A stretch of DNA of 64,000 nucleotides from IMG/VR virus record IMGVR_UViG_3300042402_002564, positions 62,001 to 126,000 of that record; one strand, written 5' to 3'. Of this stretch, positions 4,831 to 63,906 are shown piece after piece. A program made the position numbers and the translations under genes. The stretch's first letter is position 1. Every line of letters begins with the position of its first letter. The notes under the pieces are model-generated. The model did no database searches. It saw nothing but the letters and a program-made list of their open reading frames with translations, and was not told the DNA's origin.

Positions 4831-5539
4831 TGGGTTCATATTTTGTATAAATTTTTTGAACGTTAGACATCCAAGGTTCATCTCTCATTTTCCAATCCAT
4901 ATCATAATCGAGTGTGATATGTGCTGAACCAATATACCTATCGATGTATGATTTGATTAGGGTTTCTCCAATAGAGACATCACCCCAATCATTATCATGC
5001 ATTATTTTTATTTTTGTATATAATTTAAGATACTTCTTCATCCAATAATAATTACCGTGGGCAAAGTAATCAACATAAGAATCTTCTGGATTGCATGGTC
5101 CTGGATGAACCTTCCATACAGGTAAAACTAAATCTTTATCTGATTGAAGATTGAAATTTTTTATTGATAAATCTGCTCTACATTTAATAATAATATCATA
5201 TTCTTTTGGTTCAAAAAGATATAATCCAAGAAAGTTTGTATACCACTGTCTTAGTATTCTATAAGACCATTCTCTTCCATGTGCTTCTAATCCATTTGAT
5301 TTGAATTCAAAATTTGGAAGAGATTCTTTATCTCTAAACAAATAATTTTTTGGTTTATATTTTTCTATTACTTTATTTACATTTACTTGGACTATTTCAG
5401 ACCCCATGTAAAGTTCAGAGTAAGTATATGAACTAATATATACATCTGCCGAATACTTATCAATTATATTTTGTTTTATGTTTTGGAAGTGGTTCTCCCA
5501 ATTCCTCATATATCCAGTTAATAATAGAGCAACTTTCAT
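4799..5539 (-). CDS. Glycosyltransferase-like/polysaccharide-modifying protein
   Basis: MKVALLLTGYMR, YDIIIKCRADL and DYFAHG motifs. This is the only credible minus-strand gene. Confidence 0.5.
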   Translation of the reverse strand: MKVALLLTGYMRNWENHFQNIKQNIIDKYSADVYISSYTYSELYMGSEIVQVNVNKVIEKYKPKNYLFRDKESLPNFEFKSNGLEAHGREWSYRILRQWYTNFLGLYLFEPKEYDIIIKCRADLSIKNFNLQSDKDLVLPVWKVHPGPCNPEDSYVDYFAHGNYYWMKKYLKLYTKIKIMHDNDWGDVSIGETLIKSYIDRYIGSAHITLDYDMDWKMRDEPWMSNVQKIYTKYEPTKVVTTGMGE

Positions 5540-6638: not shown

Positions 6639-6709
6639 GCGGGTGTGGTGTAGCGGTAACATACCATCCTTCCAAGTTGTAGTCACGGGTTCGATCCCCG
6701 TCACCCGCT
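6639..6709 (+). tRNA. trnG: tRNA-Gly (TCC)
   Basis: Acceptor GCGGGTG/CACCCGC, anticodon loop CT-TCC-AA, T-arm ACGGG-TTCGATC-CCCGT. Confidence 0.92.
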
Positions 6710-7362: not shown

Positions 7363-7779
7363 ATGTTAGGAACTTGCTCTTATTGTTCGCAAAAGTTTAA
7401 GTACAAACCATCACAACAAAGTGGTAAGTATTGCTCTAACACTTGTCAGCAAGAGATTCAAAAAAGACAAAGGATTTCTGAGTGGTTATCTGGGGGAAAA
7501 CTTCCAGGTAAAACTACACTAAGAGAATATCTCACAGAAAAACACGGCTATAAATGTTCGTGCTGTGGGATAACTGAATGGAACAATAACCCAATCAGTT
7601 TAGAGGTTGACCATATTGATGGAAACCCCTATAATGATAGTCCTGACAATCTCAGGTTTATCTGTCCTAACTGTCATTCTCAAACACCTACATATAAGGC
7701 AAAGAATAAAGGTAACGGCAGAGTTCATAGACGTGAGAAAGCAAAATTAGATTTTCATAAACAAAAAATATGCTCCTAA
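7363..7779 (+). CDS. HNH (homing) endonuclease with N-terminal zinc finger
   Basis: CSYC...YCSNTC and CSCCG...LEVDHIDGNPYNDSPDNLRFICPNCH. Confidence 0.88.
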   Translation: MLGTCSYCSQKFKYKPSQQSGKYCSNTCQQEIQKRQRISEWLSGGKLPGKTTLREYLTEKHGYKCSCCGITEWNNNPISLEVDHIDGNPYNDSPDNLRFICPNCHSQTPTYKAKNKGNGRVHRREKAKLDFHKQKICS

Positions 7780-15490: not shown

Positions 15491-16729
15491 ATGACACCCA
15501 TGAAACTCCGAACTCATCAGTCCGAAGCACTCTCCATCATGAGCAATACCCCCAAAGGTACTATTGTGGTTCCTACTGGCGGTGGCAAGTCCCTGATTGC
15601 CATTATGGATGCTGTGCGTCAGTTTGAGCAAGGAAACAAAACCATTGTGGTGGTTGCTCCTCGTCTCATGCTTGCACGTCAGTTGTCTGCTGAGTTTACA
15701 GAGCACATTACCAATGCTTCTGTGATGCATGTTCACTCTGGTAATGATCTTCCTTATTTTACTACTACAAAACCCAAAGAGATCTTCTCTTGGTGCTATC
15801 GCACTAATGGTAATAAGTTGATTTTTACTACTTATCAATCTTTGTATCGTATTGAGCAGGCAGATATTGTAGTTGATACAATCTATTATGATGAAGCACA
15901 CAACTCGGTCAAAAAGAGTTTTTACCCTACCGTCAAGCATTTCTCTTCTAATGCTAACCGCAGTTATTTCTTCACTGCTACTCCTAAGTATTCTGCTACT
16001 GCTTCCAAACCTGGAATGAACGATGTGGAAGTTTATGGTGGAATCATTTACAATGTTGCTGCTACACGCCTCGTCAACAACGGTTCTATTCTTCCCCCTA
16101 AGATTAACGCAATTAATATCGGTGGTATCCGTCTGAAGGGCGAGGAGGCAGCAGAGAGGGACTGTATGACCCTTCTGGATACCCTGTACAATGAAGAGCA
16201 CATGGAGAAGGTTTTGATTGCTGCTCCTAACACTAAAGTGATGATCCGTATGCTTGCAGAGACTGATTTCTTGAAAGAAGTTCAGTCTATGGGTTATGAC
16301 CTTCTTTGGATTACCAGCAAGCATGGTTCGTTCCTTAACGACAAAAAGATTTCCCGTGAGGAATTCTTTAATCTTGTTCGTGAGTTTGGTGCAGACCCTG
16401 ACAAAAAGTTCATTGTTCTTCACTATTCCATTCTCAGCGAAGGAATCTCTGTTCCTGGTCTGACTTCTTTGATTCTCATGCGTCAGATGAATGTGATTGA
16501 AATGTGTCAGTCTGTTGGTCGCGTCATTCGTCTTCATCTTGATGATGTGAAGCGTATTCAAGAAGGAACTCTTGTTCCTGGTAAACTTCAGGATTACACT
16601 AAATCTTTTGGTTTAGTTCATGTTCCTGTCTACAACAATGTTGGAATTGCTACTGTGAAGCGTCTCCAAAGTATTGTTGATACTGTATTTGTTCAAGGTC
16701 AACCTGCAATCTCTACTATTAAACGATGA
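15491..16729 (+). CDS. Superfamily 2 (DEAH) helicase, ResIII-like
   Basis: PTGGGKS, YYDEAH, FTATP, LSEGISVP and QSVGRVIR. Confidence 0.9.
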   Translation: MTPMKLRTHQSEALSIMSNTPKGTIVVPTGGGKSLIAIMDAVRQFEQGNKTIVVVAPRLMLARQLSAEFTEHITNASVMHVHSGNDLPYFTTTKPKEIFSWCYRTNGNKLIFTTYQSLYRIEQADIVVDTIYYDEAHNSVKKSFYPTVKHFSSNANRSYFFTATPKYSATASKPGMNDVEVYGGIIYNVAATRLVNNGSILPPKINAINIGGIRLKGEEAAERDCMTLLDTLYNEEHMEKVLIAAPNTKVMIRMLAETDFLKEVQSMGYDLLWITSKHGSFLNDKKISREEFFNLVREFGADPDKKFIVLHYSILSEGISVPGLTSLILMRQMNVIEMCQSVGRVIRLHLDDVKRIQEGTLVPGKLQDYTKSFGLVHVPVYNNVGIATVKRLQSIVDTVFVQGQPAISTIKR

Positions 16730-29107: not shown

Positions 29108-29743
29108 ATGATTAAAAATATATTCAATAAATTTTTTGATCGTTTTTTAAAAGATTATGACTTAAAAACTTATAATATAAATTTGGTAGATAGGAAGAAT
29201 GAAAGAATTTCTCTCGCAGATGAAATTGCAAACCTTCATTCTAGAATAAGATATCTTGAAAGAGAAAATGTTTGTATGTCAAATGCAATGTATGAGATGG
29301 AGAACAGACTACAAGCACAAATTGACAAAATTAATCCTACAGTGTTAGATTTAAAGAACTTTAGTTTGGGAGACACTTAATGTACGAGTCTTTAACAGAA
29401 TTCGAAAGAGCACTTGCTCGTTTTGGAGATAAAGTTCAACTGATAGTTGGACTTGAAATTGGAGATAAAATGAGTCCTGAAATTGCATATCAGGAAATCA
29501 AAGAGATGTTGAAAGAACTTAAAAAACTTCGTAAAAAAGAAAAATCTAATTGGGAAGAAGATGACAAATAAAAAAGATAGTTTAAGAGTAACTGAAGAAA
29601 AAGATGGTAGTTTTACCGTTGAATGGGACTCAGATGACCCAGCATACTCTTGGTTAAGTACAAAAACAGAAGAGGAATTGACAGAAATTTTAACAGAGCA
29701 GATTGAAAATTATTTAAATCAACTTAAAAATAATGAGCGATAA
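29108..29743 (+). CDS. Three small hypothetical proteins
   Basis: Coupled ORFs 29108..29380, 29380..29571 and 29561..29743. Confidence 0.5.
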
Positions 29744-29987
29744 AGTAATCAAATGGTCTTTACCTGTACAATATGATCCAGAATCTGGTGATTATTTTAT
29801 CTCTTTTCCAGAAGATCTTTTACATGCTGCAAATTTAAAAGAAGGTGACCAAGTATTTTGGGTTGATAATGGCGACAAGACTTTTACAATAAAAAAAGTA
29901 AAAGAAGATGCACCAAAAACTTATCAGGATATGATTGCTGATGGGTGGGAAATGACTGTAGATGGATTCTGGATAAAGGAGAATTAA
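29733..29987 (+). CDS. AbrB/MazE-like DNA-binding protein
   Basis: YFISFPEDLLHAANLKEGDQVFW...FTIKK fits the swapped-hairpin pattern. Confidence 0.6.
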   Translation: MSDKVIKWSLPVQYDPESGDYFISFPEDLLHAANLKEGDQVFWVDNGDKTFTIKKVKEDAPKTYQDMIADGWEMTVDGFWIKEN

Positions 29988-56362: not shown

Positions 56363-57328
56363 ATGAGTAAGACCTATACAGAGAGAATGCAGTATTTAAA
56401 CCGAACTGGTTTGTTCAGTGGTATTACTCATGCCCTTTTAGAAGATAAGGTTAGGAATAATTTTTATAGTGATATTTTAAAAAGTGCAAAAGGTAAACGT
56501 GTTGTTGATGTAGGTTCTGGGAGTGGACTCTTAGGATTCCTAGCATTAAAGCACGGGGCAGAACATGTTACTTTTATAGAACAGGATAAGGTATCATCAA
56601 ATCATATTATGAATGTGATTCGTAGGATGAAGATTGATGAATCAAAGTATCGTGTGATTAATGATGAATTTGTTGCAAGTCGTTGGGATGAATATGAACT
56701 CATTAATCCTGATATGATTGTACATGAAATTATTGGTAATTTTATTTGGAATGAAACAATGACTTGTGCATTTGATGTTCATTTACCAAATGTAGAGATT
56801 ATACCAAGTTCTTATCAATTAAAGTATAGTATTGTTCCACTTACTGATGAAGGATTTAAATTCTTTTGTGATTATGAGAATAGGAATGCAAAGAATAAAC
56901 CAGACCTTGATGTTGATTTAGTAGGGTCTGTATTTGTTGATTATTATACAAAGGTCTTAAGTCTTTATAATACTGAGGTTAGTACAAAACCATCAATATT
57001 GAATCATATAAGAGATAAGGATATTTTAAATGATATCTATTCTAAGGCAATTCATCATTATGACCATGTAGTGAATATTAATGATGAGAATGACTTTAAT
57101 CATAAAAGAAGAGTTAAATTCAAGTTACCTAAAACAAAACGTCCTTATTTAATTCTATGTGAACCATTTGTTCATCATGGTGAGTATACACTTGAGTTTA
57201 AGTCTACCTCATCATTTAATGGTTATAATCAACCTATCTTAGTTCCACCTAATTTAAAGTGTAAGTATTATGAATATGTTTTTGATATTCAACATACTTA
57301 TACGAAGATAGATAATTATTATGCGTAA
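56363..57328 (+). CDS. Class I SAM methyltransferase, PRMT-like
   Basis: LLEDKVRNNFY, VVDVGSGSGLL, FIE and DMIVHEIIGNFIWNE. Confidence 0.8.
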   Translation: MSKTYTERMQYLNRTGLFSGITHALLEDKVRNNFYSDILKSAKGKRVVDVGSGSGLLGFLALKHGAEHVTFIEQDKVSSNHIMNVIRRMKIDESKYRVINDEFVASRWDEYELINPDMIVHEIIGNFIWNETMTCAFDVHLPNVEIIPSSYQLKYSIVPLTDEGFKFFCDYENRNAKNKPDLDVDLVGSVFVDYYTKVLSLYNTEVSTKPSILNHIRDKDILNDIYSKAIHHYDHVVNINDENDFNHKRRVKFKLPKTKRPYLILCEPFVHHGEYTLEFKSTSSFNGYNQPILVPPNLKCKYYEYVFDIQHTYTKIDNYYA

Positions 57329-57338
57329 GATGTTTTAA

Positions 57339-58304
57339 ATGGCAAAATATTCGGAACGAATGATTCATGAGAATCAAAGACCAAATGGTTATAATGGCAT
57401 TTGTTTTGGTCTATTAGAAGATGCCGCAAGAAATAAGTTTTATGATGAATCACTCAAAAGAGCAAAGGGTAAACGTGTTGTTGATGTAGGTTCTGGTAGT
57501 GGATTGTTAGGGTTTTTAGCATTAAAACACGGGGCAAAGCATGTTACTTTTATTGAGCAGAATATTGTATCTTATTCTCATATCAGAAGAGTATCTGAAA
57601 TCATGAAGATTGATAAGTCCCGTTATCGTATCATTAATGATGAATTTGTTGCAAGTCGTTGGGATGAATATGATTTAAAAAACCCCGATATGATTGTACA
57701 TGAATTAGTTGGTAGTTATATTTGGAATGATACAATTGGACAAGCATTTAATCAGTTTATACCAAACGTAGAGATTATACCAAATTTATATGAATTAAAG
57801 TTTAGTATTATTCCTTTAAGCGAATCTGGTTTTAATTACCTTCGTAAGTATCAGAATGAGAAGTCTATTGAGAAGAGAAGATTCCTTGATGTACGTGTTC
57901 CTATTGATAAGAAGTTTATTGCTTATTATGAAAATGTTTTAAATGATTATGATTATGAGATAGGTATCGTTCCTAGAATAATGAGGTCATTGCATGATGA
58001 GTTGTTTAATAAACTATACTCAAAGGATAGAATAGAGTATTATACACATGTATTTGATATTAATAAAGAGAAGGATTATAAGAGTAATACTATTGCATCG
58101 TTTAATTTACCTAAGACAGATAATCCTTATTTAATCTTTATTCATCCGTATCTTCACTCTAAGAAGAATACATTAGACTTTGTAGAGAGTACCTCTTTTA
58201 GTGGTCATCGTAAACCTATACTGATTCCACCTAAAGCGAATTGTAATAAGTTAAGGTATGATGTATTGAAGAATTATATGACGATTGATGATGTAAAAGT
58301 ATAG
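57339..58304 (+). CDS. Class I SAM methyltransferase, PRMT-like paralog
   Basis: LLEDAARNKFY, VVDVGSGSGLL and DMIVHELVGSYIWND; same length as its neighbour (321 aa). Confidence 0.8.
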   Translation: MAKYSERMIHENQRPNGYNGICFGLLEDAARNKFYDESLKRAKGKRVVDVGSGSGLLGFLALKHGAKHVTFIEQNIVSYSHIRRVSEIMKIDKSRYRIINDEFVASRWDEYDLKNPDMIVHELVGSYIWNDTIGQAFNQFIPNVEIIPNLYELKFSIIPLSESGFNYLRKYQNEKSIEKRRFLDVRVPIDKKFIAYYENVLNDYDYEIGIVPRIMRSLHDELFNKLYSKDRIEYYTHVFDINKEKDYKSNTIASFNLPKTDNPYLIFIHPYLHSKKNTLDFVESTSFSGHRKPILIPPKANCNKLRYDVLKNYMTIDDVKV

Positions 58305-58491
58305 TTTTTAATGTTTTTATATTAAAAAATGTATTAAAAAACATATATTAGTGTTTTTAATGTGGTATTATACTAGTGTTATATGGTAGTCTTATACTCT
58401 TATAATCTCTCTTATATCCATTATAATCGTGCCAGATCCTTTGAGTTTTATGCTTATTATACCTCTGGATCCTTGTGATCTTAGGCTGCGT

Positions 58492-58580
58492 ATTATAGCA
58501 CAACCGCGAAAAAATGTCAAGACCCCCGCTCCAAAAACATAAGGACGCGGCATTTTACCATAAGACGCCCCGTGTGTCAA
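58492..58580 (-). promoter_or_regulatory. Two tandem leftward sigma70 promoters
   Basis: On the minus strand: TTGACA-17-TATAAT (58520-58492) and TTGACA-17-TAAAAT (58580-58552). Confidence 0.75.
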
Positions 58581-58588
58581 CTCCCAGA

Positions 58589-58833
58589 ATCTCGACGAGA
58601 ATACACGGTTATATCTCGACTAGATTACATCACGATATAACAGTATCATTATATCTTATAATCTCGACGAGTATATCACATAAGATCTCGTCGAGTCATA
58701 TTACAATATAACATTAGTATTATATCATACAATCTCGACGATACATTGTCACAGTATCATAACATAACTTCATAATTAGTCATAATTATCTCGACGAGTA
58801 TCATATATACCATCAATAAGATCTCGACGAGAT
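58589..58833. repeat. Array of seven ATCTCGWCGAGAT-like palindromes
   Basis: Copies start at 58589, 58613, 58661, 58685, 58732, 58788 and 58821. Confidence 0.92.
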
Positions 58834-58848
58834 GTGCGTCAGATTCCC

Positions 58849-58877
58849 TTGACAGGTCTTGCTGCATCATGTACAAT
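58849..58877 (+). promoter_or_regulatory. Sigma70 promoter
   Basis: TTGACA-17-TACAAT. Confidence 0.7.
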
Positions 58878-58901
58878 GTACACAGTTCGCACAAAGTTCT
58901 C

Positions 58902-60346
58902 ATGGGTAACACCGCATTTATGGAAGCACAAAAGCATAAGTATCGCGTCACTCTAGAACTCGACGTTCTTGGTGACTTCGACCCCCATAATATTAATTGG
59001 GAGAAGCTCTTTGACCTTAATCCTACAGAGAGTGTGAAGTCTTATGTGGAGGACTTGGACTATCCTTGGTAACAGAATATTATACCATAAGGGCATCTAA
59101 TGCGTCAAGTGCTGACGCACCCTTATGTGTATAAGTATTTCAAAGCTGGGGAAGTGACGATGTATTGTCGTCTGCAGGGATACCCTTCCCCTCTTCTGGT
59201 TGTCTGCAAATGATACATCAGAACGCCCGCAAAACCTGCATTGGGTGCCAGTTTGGTGAACCGTCCACCTGTGGCACAAAGACCCAGAAGATGTGGTGTA
59301 CAGTTGCTGGGCAAACGCAATTCGACCGATGATTTTTTTGACATCTACCAATCATGGTTGTGTGTATACTCTGTCTCAAGAGGACGGTGATGAGTTGTAC
59401 TTTGCACCCATCTATGCAAACGGAACTATTAATCTGGAGGAGTTTGCTCCTGTGGATATGAGTACTGTTGACATGGATGACATGGAGGTGTATGATATCC
59501 GTAACCGACTGGTTGCCATGTCCAATATTTGAACTGGCACAAGGGGGTTGACAAGACCCCCACCATCGGTTAAATTTAAATCGTTCACCACTCAACCAAA
59601 CAATGGGAACCCGCTCTCGCATCGGTTACGAACTTCCTGATCACTCCGTGGTTAGTGTTTACTGCCACTGGGATGGTTATGTAGAGAACAACGGTCGCAT
59701 TCTGGTAGAGCACTATCAGAACCGCGATGATGTACAAGAACTGATTGATGGTGGTTCTATGTCTTCTCTTCGCACAACTCATCTGTGGGAGACTGCAGCA
59801 GTACGTGATGAGGATGGTAAGATTGTAGAGAACCCTGATGGTAGTTGGGTTATGTCTCCAACCCGCGATGCACAACCTCTTTATCACACTGAGCGTGGTG
59901 AAGATCTGAATGTGGATCACACTTCATTTGATAAGTTTGTATCAGGTGATTGGGGTGAGGATTATGCTTACCTGTACGACCTCAACGGTAACTGGAAAGC
60001 ATATAAGATTGGGTGGGGACCTGTTGAGCGTGTGGACATCCCCAACTACGTGACAGCGTAGGAACTGGCACACGGGTCCTGGGTCATGACCTAAAACTGA
60101 CCTATACTTCTCTCAGTTCACACCACTCCGCTAATGGCACTCTCAAATCAATCCATGAATAAAATTGCAAGTGCAATGGTTCAAGAGGTTGTTGAGGAAC
60201 TTTATGAGTCCGATGAATGGATGGATTTCCTCTATACTAACATCGGTGGTATCATTGTTGGCAAACTTGGTCAAATTGATGATACTGTCCTGGCAGAATT
60301 GATTATGGGTGTTGCAGACCGTATTAGTCTCAAAGCACACACATAA
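58902..60346 (+). CDS. Early hypothetical genes (58902..59072, ~59329..59532, 59603..60061, 60134..60346)
   Basis: Each sits behind its own promoter. The 59603 ORF has the MGTRSRIG...YCHWDGY motif common in phage early proteins. Confidence 0.6.
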
Positions 60347-60423
60347 TCTCGACTAGATGCGTGTCACGTATCAAATCAATCTCGACGAGATACGTGACAC
60401 ATCATTTGACATCATCTCGATTA
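60346..60423. repeat. Second palindrome cluster plus 12-bp inverted repeat at the tRNA-Leu promoter
   Basis: Copies at 60346, 60379 and a half site at 60414; GTGTCACGTATC/GATACGTGACAC; TTGACA-17-TATCAT at 60406-60434. Confidence 0.85.
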
Positions 60424-60448
60424 TATGTTATCATATAATCAACCACAT

Positions 60449-60532
60449 GGGGATGTGGTGGAATCGGTAGACACAACAGACTTAAAATCTGTCGGAGGCA
60501 ACTCTGTGGGGGTTCAAGTCCCCCCGTCCCTA
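60449..60532 (+). tRNA. trnL: tRNA-Leu (TAA)
   Basis: Acceptor GGGGATG/CGTCCCT, anticodon arm ACAGA-CTTAAAA-TCTGT, long variable arm, GGTTCAAGTCC T-loop, no intron. Confidence 0.92.
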
Positions 60533-60592
60533 TTACCACTCTCAAGGTATATTATACCTGAGGTGGTCCAAACTCTTCTCCTAGAGGCACTC

Positions 60593-60914: not shown

Positions 60915-63906
60915 TGTCTCTGGTTTGTGCCTCTGACCTTGCCACCCGCCGCCTGGTGTGGGTGAAGAACAACACCGCCACTGGTGTGCCAGCTGCCGCA
61001 CCGTCCGTCGTCTGGGCAGAGTTCGGTCGCCGTGGTATGATTTGATAGTTCGCAACCGAACCTCATGACCGTCCGCACCAACGTCCTTCCCCTGGATCTC
61101 TGCACTGTCACCCTCACCGAGGCACAGTGGAGCACGATCCGAACTGCTGTGCTCTGCCTCGCTTGTGATTGCCGCATCGCTGGCAAGACCACTGACGCAG
61201 ACTACTATCTGAACGCCTACAACAACCTGAAGGCAGCGATGGGGATGGACGCCTGACCTAGTGGCACAGGGGGACTTGCAAAGGTCCCCCACACCCCCTA
61301 CACTACATTTGTTCATTCAAAAACACCAATGCCAATCAATCTCACCAAAGAAGACCTCAACTTCTACGAAGAAAACTATTCTAATGTCATGCAACTTGGC
61401 ATGATTAACACCTTCGATGAGCGGAGTGATCGGATTCGCTTCCGTTCGATTGCAAAGGCAATTCAGGAGCAAATTGATTCTCTGCAAGTTGAGGATCAAA
61501 AGCGTGTTCCTTTTACAAAGGATGAGATTGTACCTGTTTTTGAAGAGTATCTGTGTTCTTATACTCTCAACGGTCAAGTGAAAGTTTTTGACCGCAAACT
61601 TGCTGCTTCTGGTATTCAATCGTTCCGAAAGAATCCTGTTGCTTCGGTGATGGGTATTCATGGTCAGATTGCATACTACGATCAATACAACGATGTTATC
61701 ACCAAATCGTTTGATCGTGCTGGTAACACTCTGAAGGAGATGCTCCGCCAGTATAATGAAATGATGGGTGTTGAGCGGTTCGCCCTGGACTGATTAACAA
61801 CCCTTATGGGTCAGGGGGTTGACTCCTGACCCATTCCATCCCATACTGTCTTTGTTCACCACTTGAACCTCATGCCCGAAATCACCTGGATTAACGACAT
61901 TCCGATGCCCACAATGTGGGAAGAAGATTATCAAGAAACAGAGTATAAAGATTACGAGGAATCTGATTGGTATAATGACCCTAACTGTGTCATGTCCCGC
62001 CATCATTATTGAACAATGATTGAAGTTCTTGCCGCTTACGTTGTCGGAATGATGCAGGTTGCACCTAATCTCATTCAGACAGATTACCTCAACGAAGACA
62101 AGCAAATCATTTCCGTCACTGAAGTAATCCAAGAGGTTCCACAATCATGACACTCACACACCTCAACTATCAAGAGATTGATGCCCTGATGGCAATTCTT
62201 GAGAGTAGTGATTGGCATTATCTGACTGAACTTGTGGATGCAGACATTCCGCTTCTGTATGACAAACTCACCGAAATGAGGGATGAACTGTGACTGAAAC
62301 TCTCCGACAGTATCACTTCACTGACGAACAGATTGACTTCCTGATGCGAATTGTGCGGAACAATGCACAATTTGAAGATGGTGAAGACCGTGAGTTCATG
62401 GAAGAACTTGCCAATCAAATTGAAGATCAAATCGTCAACCATCCTGACAACGACTGATGACACCTAACGCACCCTACGGTTGCCAAACCTATAAAGATCT
62501 GCTGGTCATGTTACAATCTATGACAGCAGAGCAGTTGGACTGCACTCCTACGGTGTATGATCCTGATGCGGATGAGTATTATCCTATCACCACACTTCTC
62601 ACCGCATCTGACACCAACGACGTGTTAGACTCTGATCATCCCTACCTCTCCTTCTGATGAACCGTTCTGAACTGCAAGACCAACTCATTCAGCAGATGTT
62701 GGATGACATGGATCTCAAGACAATGACCCAACTCTGTTATGATTATCTGGATGAGGGTTATGGTAAGTATTCTGATGAGGAATTGATCACTGAATGTGAA
62801 GAATACTACCCCGATTTGCTTGAAAATCAATAAAGTATAAATTATTACAGGATGGGTTGGTATCCTGATTGTCACCGATACCATAAAACTCTACAGAGTC
62901 TTTCCCGTCCTACCCAATCCCTGAACTGGCACAGACCCCTTGACAGGGTGCCAGGAATCGCTTAATCTAAGAAAACAAGCGGGGGTGAAGCATCCCGCTC
63001 AAAACACTTCACTCAAACCCTTACAATGTGATTTAATTATGTCTCAGTTCGCTTTTACTTCTTCCGCCATCGAAAGCATCTCTGATGTGAATGATGGTAA
63101 AGTGACTATCACCTTCAACGGTGGTCGTGAGTATACCTACGGTGTGCAAGATGTTGAGATGTTCGTGTCTCAACTGAGCACCGTGATTGCCGAACAGCAG
63201 TCCGTGGGTCGTTTTGTAAATAATGCTATCAAAACGGAACAACTGCTCGCAGTGACCGCCGCCTGATAGTATAATACGGGGGGAGGCAACTCCTCCCATC
63301 ACACTACTCCCAAAGAACAATGACTGATTACTTCGACCCTAACGAACAGTTTTCAATCCTTGATCTTATTGATGATTCACAACCTTATGAAGATTTCTCT
63401 CCTGAGGTTAGACAAATGCTTAACGAAGTTGAGTATTACGATGACTACTCTTATGGGGTAGAAGTCGATAATGATTACGACTAATCTCGACTAGTTAATC
63501 ATCATAATCTCGTCGAGATCACGTCATTAAATCTCGACGAGATACGCACACAAATCACTTGAAATTCTTCTCTTTAACATGGAAAATCGTTCGCTCCTGC
63601 TTTCGCTTCTTCGTAAAGGTCAAACTGGTGAAGAAATTCTCCAGATTCTGGAAACTATCATTGGCAGCGATGATGATAGTGATGGTCCTACCCTAAACCC
63701 CATCGATTTCTGATACAATGGAAACTGCATTTGTGACACCCGTATCTAAGAAAGCAAAAAACCGTTTTGCTAATCTTATGGGTGGACTTGATGAGTGTAT
63801 TGTAGAACAACACAAAGGAGACAAAGTGTTCCTCACAAGTGCAAACGGTAAAAACCATTTCTGGGTTAACATTAACAAAGATCCAGACTGGATTGTAGAG
63901 TTCTAA
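60915..63906 (+). CDS. Early region of small hypothetical genes
   Basis: For example 61065..61256, 61329..61793, 62457..62657, 63039..63266 (KTSC-like: SSAIESI...TFNGGREYTY) and 63718..63906. Confidence 0.55.
63484..63543. repeat. Third cluster of three ATCTCGWCGAGAT-like palindromes
   Basis: Copies at 63484, 63507 and 63531 (spacing 23 and 24). Confidence 0.9.

Follow-up and report, generated by a model that had tools for sequence, protein, structure and literature searches.

The region 58305–58880 of a 64,000-nucleotide stretch of viral DNA (IMG/VR record IMGVR_UViG_3300042402_002564, positions 62,001 to 126,000; the whole stretch is called the window below) contains an array of short palindromes between divergent promoters, beside a very AT-rich tract. 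A preliminary description, made from the sequence of the window, had proposed that it could be a replication origin or a nucleoprotein platform. The window belongs to a T4-like, Kyanoviridae-like cyanomyovirus: its large open reading frames (ORFs) have their matches among Synechococcus and Prochlorococcus myoviruses, in the baseplate hub/lysozyme and tail-fibre families, and the small ORFs right of the array have their top matches in the freshwater phages S-SRM01 and DSL-LC03. Positions 1–58304 carry plus-strand genes, mostly at 28–39% GC. From about 58.5 kb onward GC content rises to 43–48%, and small, mostly acidic ORFs follow behind host-type promoters. This early-gene island spans about 11 kb, from 58.3 kb up to the start of gp25 and gp6 at the equivalent of about 69.2 kb. 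Its right end was read on contig L328, a near-identical sequence (14393 of 14398 shared bases identical) that was reached through an identical-protein look-up and extends the view beyond the window end. The island is flanked by an AT-rich plus-strand tract beginning with the gp5 hub on one side and by the gp25/gp6 baseplate genes on the other. The layout is the same in S-SRM01, where an island of 41–42% GC at 85–95 kb directly precedes gp25, gp6, and gp7.

The features of the locus, and the two further motif clusters of the island, are as follows.

58305..58360, very AT-rich block (56 bp, 8.9% GC), candidate DNA unwinding element; a motif at about 58322–58358 is kept in distant relatives
58344..58398, two imperfect 24–25-bp direct repeats, overlapping the copy of element B at 58363–58388
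58466..58491, minus strand, first ~25 nt of the P_L1 transcript, almost invariant in six aligned phages, with no ORF behind it
58492..58520, minus strand, P_L1, leftward sigma70-type promoter (TTGACA-17-TATAAT, 12/12 consensus positions), conserved in S-SRM01, S-T4, and 38 relatives anchored on it
58552..58580, minus strand, P_L2, second leftward promoter (TTGACA-17-TAAAAT, 11/12)
58589..58601, plus strand, palindrome copy 1, ATCTCGACGAGAA, 8 bp from the -35 of P_L2, conserved in alignment A1
58613..58625, plus strand, palindrome copy 2, ATCTCGACTAGAT, a subtype also used by S-T4
58634..58654 and 58706..58726, element B, an AT-rich quasi-palindrome, two copies in the array spacers, inverted with respect to the copy at 58363–58388
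58661..58673, plus strand, palindrome copy 3, part of a ~72-bp duplicated unit
58685..58697, plus strand, palindrome copy 4, with T at the centre
58732..58744, plus strand, palindrome copy 5, right half degenerate
58788..58800, plus strand, palindrome copy 6
58821..58833, plus strand, palindrome copy 7, perfect, ending 15 bp upstream of the -35 of P_R, conserved in A1
58849..58877, plus strand, P_R, rightward sigma70-type promoter (TTGACA-17-TACAAT, 11/12)
60346..60391, plus strand, second cluster, two copies (60346, 60379), ending 14 bp upstream of the tRNA-Leu(TAA) promoter at 60406–60434
63484..63543, plus strand, third cluster of three copies, at 63484, 63507, and 63531, in the gap preceding a 44-amino-acid ORF at 63579

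The two leftward promoters and the rightward one had been pointed out in the preliminary description, and all three were recovered. P_R serves the first gene of the island, a member of the PHROG 12516 family with its end at 59072. Downstream of the leftward promoters there are about 190 bp of DNA free of ORFs, ending in the 8.9% GC block; this gene-free AT-rich tract (58305–58490, 26.9% GC), also described earlier, contains only short minus-strand ORFs with TTG starts. The leftward promoters are of the sigma70 type and not of the MotA type, and cyanomyoviruses lack motA (PMC2984593). An almost invariant block of ~65 bp, made up of P_L1 and the ~25 nt at the start of its transcript, is shared by the window and its five closest relatives. 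P_L2 is found in three of these six aligned phages, namely the window and the two closest to it. The sequence of the AT-rich block is conserved across the 38 relatives and in alignment A1; its candidacy as an unwinding element comes from its composition.

Scanning the window for ATCTCGWCGAGAT with up to two mismatches gives 12 copies, against 0.75 expected from shuffled sequences (none of 100 shuffles reaches 12). Seven of them, at 58589–58833, are the copies of ATCTCG(A/T)CGAGAT or near variants reported earlier, with start-to-start spacings of exactly 24, 48, 24, 47, 56, and 33 bp. The five others (60346, 60379, 63484, 63507, and 63531) had been missed. All 12 lie between 58.5 and 63.6 kb; there is none in the 58 kb to the left, nor, on L328, in the rest of the island rightward to gp25. 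In S-SRM01 the 11 exact cores of the whole 240,842-bp genome fall at 85,571–91,005, i.e., within 5.4 kb, in its highest-GC stretch (42%, against 30–39% elsewhere). Random scatter of the motif would have spoken against a specific site; its mapping on the window, L328, and the S-SRM01 genome shows instead that it is clustered in one island.

The repeat departs from the 13-bp palindrome described earlier. A logo of 607 sites shows an asymmetric conserved unit, ATCTCGACGAG followed by a weaker "at", and an A at the centre is favoured over a T by 190 to 84. The ATCTCGACTAGAT subtype is used three times in the window, and the array expanded through duplication of a ~72-bp unit. The copies had also been called phased. 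This holds for the relatives, where spacings peak at 31–33 and 42–43 bp, that is, three and four helical turns, but only loosely for the window, whose spacings of 24, 47–48, and 56 bp are not whole turns.

A megablast search of the locus against 50,697 phage records gave zero matches, and relatives were reached only through proteins and through the motif. Comparison with them, one of the checks put forward earlier, places arrays at orthologous positions in S-SRM01, in S-T4, and in most uncultured relatives. Three clusters of the motif occur in S-SRM01, and the first of them is syntenic with the array of the window. In S-T4, a cultured marine phage, the region is complete, and the noncoding copies there are of the ATCTCGACTAGAT subtype. 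Scanning IMG/VR for tandem motifs matched more than 120 contigs, mostly because of two copies within an acidic ORF of about 49 amino acids. Since copies in this ORF dominate the matches, a second, unbiased set of 78 loci was gathered through the neighbouring protein at 59603–60061 and not through the motif. At least three copies are present at the same relative places in 57 of the 78 loci; in the motif-negative loci the query gene stands in a different context, so that they say nothing on absence of the motif from those genomes. An association between the presence of the gene and that of the motif was considered and set aside, as it reflects shared synteny only. When the tandem pattern was sought in 185,579 cellular genomes, the matches listed were mainly high-GC actinobacteria, proteobacteria, and haloarchaea, with no cyanobacterium among the 80 listed. 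To judge from these matches, the motif does not seem to be a host motif. Two tandem-motif matches (5061–5175) were found on a short contig binned as an uncultured Rickettsiales metagenome-assembled genome (L215), which is probably a wrongly binned cyanophage fragment.

In about 100 relatives the first gene of the island is the ~49-amino-acid acidic, tyrosine-rich ORF (MYDDYD...LAYRHYA) mentioned above. It is without annotation in the S-T4 and S-SRM01 records, and no intact version was found in the window. Judging from composition, one might guess that it is a DNA mimic or an anti-defence protein. Examples are found at the following positions.

L021, 10411–10560
S-SRM01 record, about 85650–85790
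S-T4 locus (L327), about 2454–2600

In 69 loci with this ORF, motif copies stand at about -12, -52, -85, -118, and -152 from the start codon, and two more lie within the ORF, where they encode Leu-Asp-Glu (LDE) tripeptides. In the unbiased set, leucine is encoded by CTC in 63 of 65 LDE tripeptides (33 of 85 elsewhere in the same ORFs), aspartate by GAC in 62 of 65 (134 of 387 elsewhere), and glutamate by GAG in 57 of 65 (6 of 42 elsewhere). Hence nucleotides, and not amino acids alone, are under constraint. The copy at -52 has a fixed relation to the promoter: in 88 of 99 distinct loci it overlaps the -35 of the main early promoter and takes up its spacer, in an orientation inverted with respect to its neighbours, with the consensus TTGCAT-CTCGTCGAG-N8-TAnAAT and a TG extended -10. 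The repeat itself differs in two relatives. In L152, a 215-kb contig, its place is taken by CAACTAGATT/ATCTAGAT, of which 12 copies are spread over all three orthologous sites, a promoter spacer included, and the third cluster, before the ortholog of the 44-amino-acid ORF, is likewise built from this different repeat. L152 nevertheless retains the AT-rich block, the tandem repeats, the leftward and rightward promoters, and the gene order. Yet another repeat variant stands upstream of the first island gene in L189. The logo, the fixed positions, the overlap with promoters, the codon bias, and the variant repeats together suggest that the motif is the site of a sequence-specific protein, probably encoded by the phage, and that the sites evolve with the lineage. 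The earlier proposal of a nucleoprotein platform is thus well supported, by confinement to the island, by conservation at orthologous places, by codon choice, and by the replacement of the repeat in two relatives.

The reading favoured here, with a probability of roughly one half, is that 58305–58880 is a control region that opens the ~11-kb early-gene island by means of operator-type ATCTCGACGAG(at) sites, and that its left half may double as an origin similar to T4 oriE. A sequence-specific protein, probably of the phage, would bind the ATCTCGACGAG(at) copies, several dimers or one oligomer covering the ~245 bp between the divergent host-type promoters. The two smaller clusters deeper in the island would be occupied as well, and early transcription would be controlled in this way; in most relatives the layout would imply repression. 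The left half, with its AT-rich block, repeats, and gene-less leftward promoters, would probably be an origin driven by an early promoter, of the T4 oriE or R-loop type, and the same bound protein would couple early transcription to the initiation of replication. As far as the arrangement of sites allows one to judge, the palindromes themselves look more like transcription operators than like parts of an origin, because they occur at two other intergenic places and, in most relatives, within the core of the main early promoter. The sites, their clustering in the island, their conservation, the selection on their DNA, and their placement relative to promoters are observed; binding by a protein, the identity of this protein, the direction of regulation, and origin activity are inferred.

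Several observations weigh against this reading. No copy in the window overlaps the core of P_R, the nearest being centred near -57, so that the repressor layout of the relatives does not apply directly to the window. Three close relatives (L132, L140, and L142) have a promoter with a -10 only, with the centre of the last copy at about -40, an arrangement that looks like activation. The bias toward a central A and the asymmetric flanks would fit a symmetric dimer poorly. The island also contains early promoters of a stem-loop type that lack the palindrome. Furthermore, the island ORFs, both those of the window phage and those of S-SRM01, have no match to a Pfam DNA-binding family. On the side of the origin, the window has no DnaA box within one mismatch and no TTGAGAAT repeat, and searches of the island ORFs in the window phage and in S-SRM01 gave no family of Rep or initiator type; most of these ORFs are ORFans, and a novel initiator could escape family searches. 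DnaA boxes, where present in relatives, may also act in transcription or titration. GC skew, which had been proposed as a check for an origin, gives no signal: it is positive throughout S-SRM01, without inflection, and for this reason is uninformative.

A candidate for the binding protein, though a weak one, is a basic protein of 86 amino acids encoded on L328 at 15956–16213 (the equivalent of about 65558–65815, some 1.6 kb beyond the window end), with homologues in 15 other loci. It has no Pfam match. Its predicted fold is a winged helix-turn-helix (predicted local distance difference test score, pLDDT, of 83), and among solved structures TFE-alpha, MarR/ArsR-type regulators, and Z-alpha domains come nearest (best E-value 8e-4, TM-scores of about 0.6–0.68). 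Two facts count against it, and with it against the reading above: its recognition helix stays the same in L152 and L189 in spite of their different repeats, and S-SRM01, which has the motif of the window, has only a very divergent look-alike, an unannotated ORF at 90331–90633 beside the third cluster. The small AbrB/SpoVT-like proteins were rejected as binders, since on inspection they look acidic and poor in arginine and they occur also in DSL-LC03, where no motif was seen nearby. The PHROG 12516 protein was rejected too, since it looks acidic and is nearly identical in L152 despite the different repeat. As a separate observation, an ORF of the window at about 29721–29900 has a C-terminal AbrB/SpoVT-like domain, shared with S-SRM01 and DSL-LC03, and a stand-alone acidic relative of this domain, of 57 amino acids, is frequent in the islands of relatives.

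As to the origin that had been proposed for the locus, there is indirect support, mostly from the part left of the palindromes, namely the AT-rich block, the repeats, and the ORF-less leftward promoter; the window has no DnaA box, and GC skew gives no signal. In the 38 relatives anchored on P_L1, one finds from left to right the AT-rich block, boxes or repeats, tandems of ~21 bp, and the leftward promoter. The boxes are two to four DnaA-type TGTGGAAAA sequences in the same orientation (at least three in 8 of the 38, at least two in 11). Read on the opposite strand, TGTGGAAAA is TTTTCCACA, the DnaA box known from cyanobacterial origins, for which binding of DnaA was confirmed experimentally (PMC4674748). 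In 21 of the 38, two to four copies of TTGAGAAT/ATTCTCAA repeats are present, never together with TGTGGAAAA boxes. The relatives also have three to six tandem direct repeats of ~21 bp, which include a late-promoter-like TATAAAT. At 58344–58398, the position of the boxes or TTGAGAAT repeats and of the tandems in relatives, the window has only two imperfect 24–25-bp units, and its palindromes are not regular tandems. Clusters of perfect or near-perfect DnaA boxes were noted in L017, L037, L039, L073, L006, and others, 100–250 bp left of the leftward promoter. Clustering of GATC was discarded as an origin hallmark: the window has five in 576 bp (top 1.7%), but the clustering is absent in most relatives. 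Taken together, the AT-rich block, DnaA boxes, and tandem repeats of relatives resemble, in their sequence, the make-up of a classical iteron-type origin. One may extend this, tentatively and at a rather low probability, to an origin of the theta type at the left edge of the island, shared by a large clade of freshwater and marine T4-like cyanophages. It would be fired by an early host-type promoter, organised by a new phage ATCTCGACGAG-binding protein, and flanked by interchangeable accessory modules that include clusters of host DnaA boxes.

Other explanations give the palindromes themselves a different role. They could be the iterons of an origin, bound by a phage initiator that opens the AT-rich DNA, with control of transcription as a secondary effect, as in autoregulated iteron replicons. 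In the iteron plasmids of F (RepE) and pPS10 (RepA) the initiator also represses a promoter through inverted repeats. The array stands beside the 8.9% GC block and promoters that fire into gene-free DNA, the same region has DnaA boxes in relatives, the spacing in relatives follows whole helical turns, and T4 oriE provides a precedent (PMC3016281). Yet the motif is also found in two further intergenic gaps and within coding DNA, the separate ~21-bp tandems of relatives, on the side of the DnaA boxes, look more like classical iterons, no Rep-like gene was found among the island ORFs, and replication in T4-type phages relies mostly on recombination-dependent initiation (PMC3016281). This makes an iteron role rather unlikely, although it is the most likely of these explanations. 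It is less likely still that the repeats are recombination boundaries that let co-infecting phages shuffle early-gene cassettes, in the manner of promoter-early stem-loops (PeSL). The clusters do separate small, variable ORF cassettes in an island that is plastic, insertions and deletions of ~72-bp units alter the copy number, PeSL-like promoters are nearby, and the motif is common to phages with different flanking genes. This explanation leaves the fixed position in the promoter spacer and the helical spacing unaccounted for, and exchange requires shared sequences and not private ones such as those of L152, where the repeat is swapped at all three places.

It seems improbable that the element acts in RNA, with neighbouring copies pairing into hairpins that process, stabilise, or pause early transcripts. 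For pairs that combine an A centre with a T centre, folding energies are -15 and -19.5 kcal/mol, at z-scores of -4.1 and -5.8, and Rfam gives weak precursor-like matches, which are far below threshold. Hairpins are, however, automatic, because any two palindrome copies pair. Most neighbours are A/A and fold modestly or weakly (z-scores of -1.0 to -2.6), the sequence is conserved without compensatory changes, the copy in the promoter spacer is upstream of the start site, and no U-tract follows the copies. The Rfam scan found the tRNA only, beside sub-threshold chance matches, and no family for the array. Slightly more improbable is the binding or titration of a host protein such as a global regulator, the sites being enhancer-like or serving as a decoy once the phage genome is amplified. 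The promoters are of host type, the DnaA boxes of relatives show that host factors are recruited at the locus, and no convincing phage binder was found. On the other hand, no cyanobacterial genome is among the matches listed, L152 uses a different repeat though its flanking proteins are 73% identical, and we know of no cyanobacterial regulator (among NtcA, LexA, RpaB, PhoB, Fur, and CRP) whose site the motif matches. The least credible explanation is a centromere-like site of the parS/sopC type or a site controlling packaging or injection, which had also been suggested and for which nothing speaks among the present results. The array is formally similar to F sopC, where short palindromes are arrayed at a spacing of three to four turns. 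The phage is a lytic T4-type myovirus, though, with no ParA/ParB-like gene recognised among the island ORFs, the part of the genome scanned; the array of the window is irregular, and the copies are tied to promoters. Packaging of T4 type is headful and starts from permuted concatemers, so that there is no fixed first-entering end.

Returning to the control region as understood above, its parts have counterparts in several known systems. T4 oriE, located in the gene 5 region, is similar in context: here too the phage is of T4 type, the locus adjoins baseplate genes, and short repeats stand beside an early host-type promoter at a shift of base composition. The 12-nt iterons of oriE have no proven role; oriE depends on an early promoter and is situated at a shift of composition (PMC3016281). 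These T4 repeats are direct and evenly spaced, in contrast with the quasi-palindromic 11–13-mers of this locus, no homologue of RepEA or RepEB was recognised, and the host DnaA boxes of some relatives are not a described feature of T4 origins. With iteron origins (lambda ori, P1 oriR, F ori2, RK2 oriV) the relatives share the AT-rich block, the DnaA boxes, the ~21-bp tandems, and nearby promoters; the initiator of such replicons also uses inverted repeats to repress a promoter. They differ in that no initiator gene was found here, the window has neither DnaA boxes nor regular 21-bp tandems, and palindromes also occur away from the putative origin. Multi-operator regions (lambda OR/OL, P22, 434, and the dispersed C1 sites of P1) likewise have several palindromic or quasi-palindromic sites between divergent promoters, the sites of most relatives overlap the -35 and spacer, and more copies are dispersed at other promoters. 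This phage is a lytic one of T4 type with no known repressor, its arrays have up to seven copies, some copies lie in coding sequence, and none covers the core promoter in the window. DNA-wrapping arrays (Lrp at pap and ilvIH, ParR-parC, F SopB-sopC) resemble those of relatives in having five to seven sites, three to four turns apart, over ~240 bp; the site sequence is unrelated, no homologue of Lrp, ParR, or SopB was found, and the spacings of the window are irregular. Finally, PeSL, reportedly described for T4-type phages by Arbiol et al. in 2010, are also repeated regulatory cassettes of plastic early regions, and PeSL-like promoters occur 1–4 kb from the array, which itself is a repeated motif similar to a protein site, in contrast with a stem-loop around a -35. 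Elements of this kind are familiar from phage operator and iteron arrays; the motif, its distribution in cyanomyoviruses, and the DnaA-box modules are absent from the searched literature. No paper there reports any of the three or places the motif in a phage context, and neither the S-SRM01 paper nor the Sullivan 2010 comparison mentions it.

T4-like cyanophages lack MotA and AsiA, the proteins with which T4 reprograms transcription, and the timing and shut-off of their earliest genes are poorly understood. To our knowledge, no replication origin has been mapped experimentally in these phages. The sole one on record is the predicted single origin of Syn9 (PMC2984593). The locus provides a concrete, conserved cis-element, with a short motif under selection at the DNA level and a strongly conserved promoter that transcribes no gene. 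Two phages in culture have the region, namely S-T4, grown on Synechococcus WH7803, and S-SRM01, whose host is a freshwater Synechococcus, which makes binding, transcription, and origin activity directly testable. If the theta-type origin were real, it would be the first defined origin of a cyanomyovirus and the first T4-type origin that recruits host DnaA.

Some further features of the surroundings may be mentioned. Just upstream of the array region there are two tandem paralogues (56363–57328 and 57339–58304; 321 amino acids each, 51% identical) without a PHROG family. They have motif I of S-adenosylmethionine methyltransferases, and precomputed Pfam matches are to Cons_hypoth95 and, weakly, to PrmA. 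Within the island of the window, GC skew is near zero or negative. The contrast in GC content between island and surroundings, which S-SRM01 also shows, could reflect adaptation of early genes to host codon usage or another evolutionary source. A second type of early promoter has TGGCACA and, behind it, a G/C-rich stem-loop with the -35 inside, with 3 matches against 0.3 expected. These resemble the PeSL of T4-type phages and are found at the positions below.

59535..59553, stem-loop early promoter
61262..61281, stem-loop early promoter
62927..62945, stem-loop early promoter
near 60064 and near 61810, further stem-loop early promoters

The tRNA-Leu(TAA) gene (60406–60533) has its own near-consensus promoter within the early island, the spacer of which contains the half-site ATCTCGA (60414). 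Two further tRNA genes of the window, for Gly at 6639 and for Thr at 7772, lie far to the left of the island.

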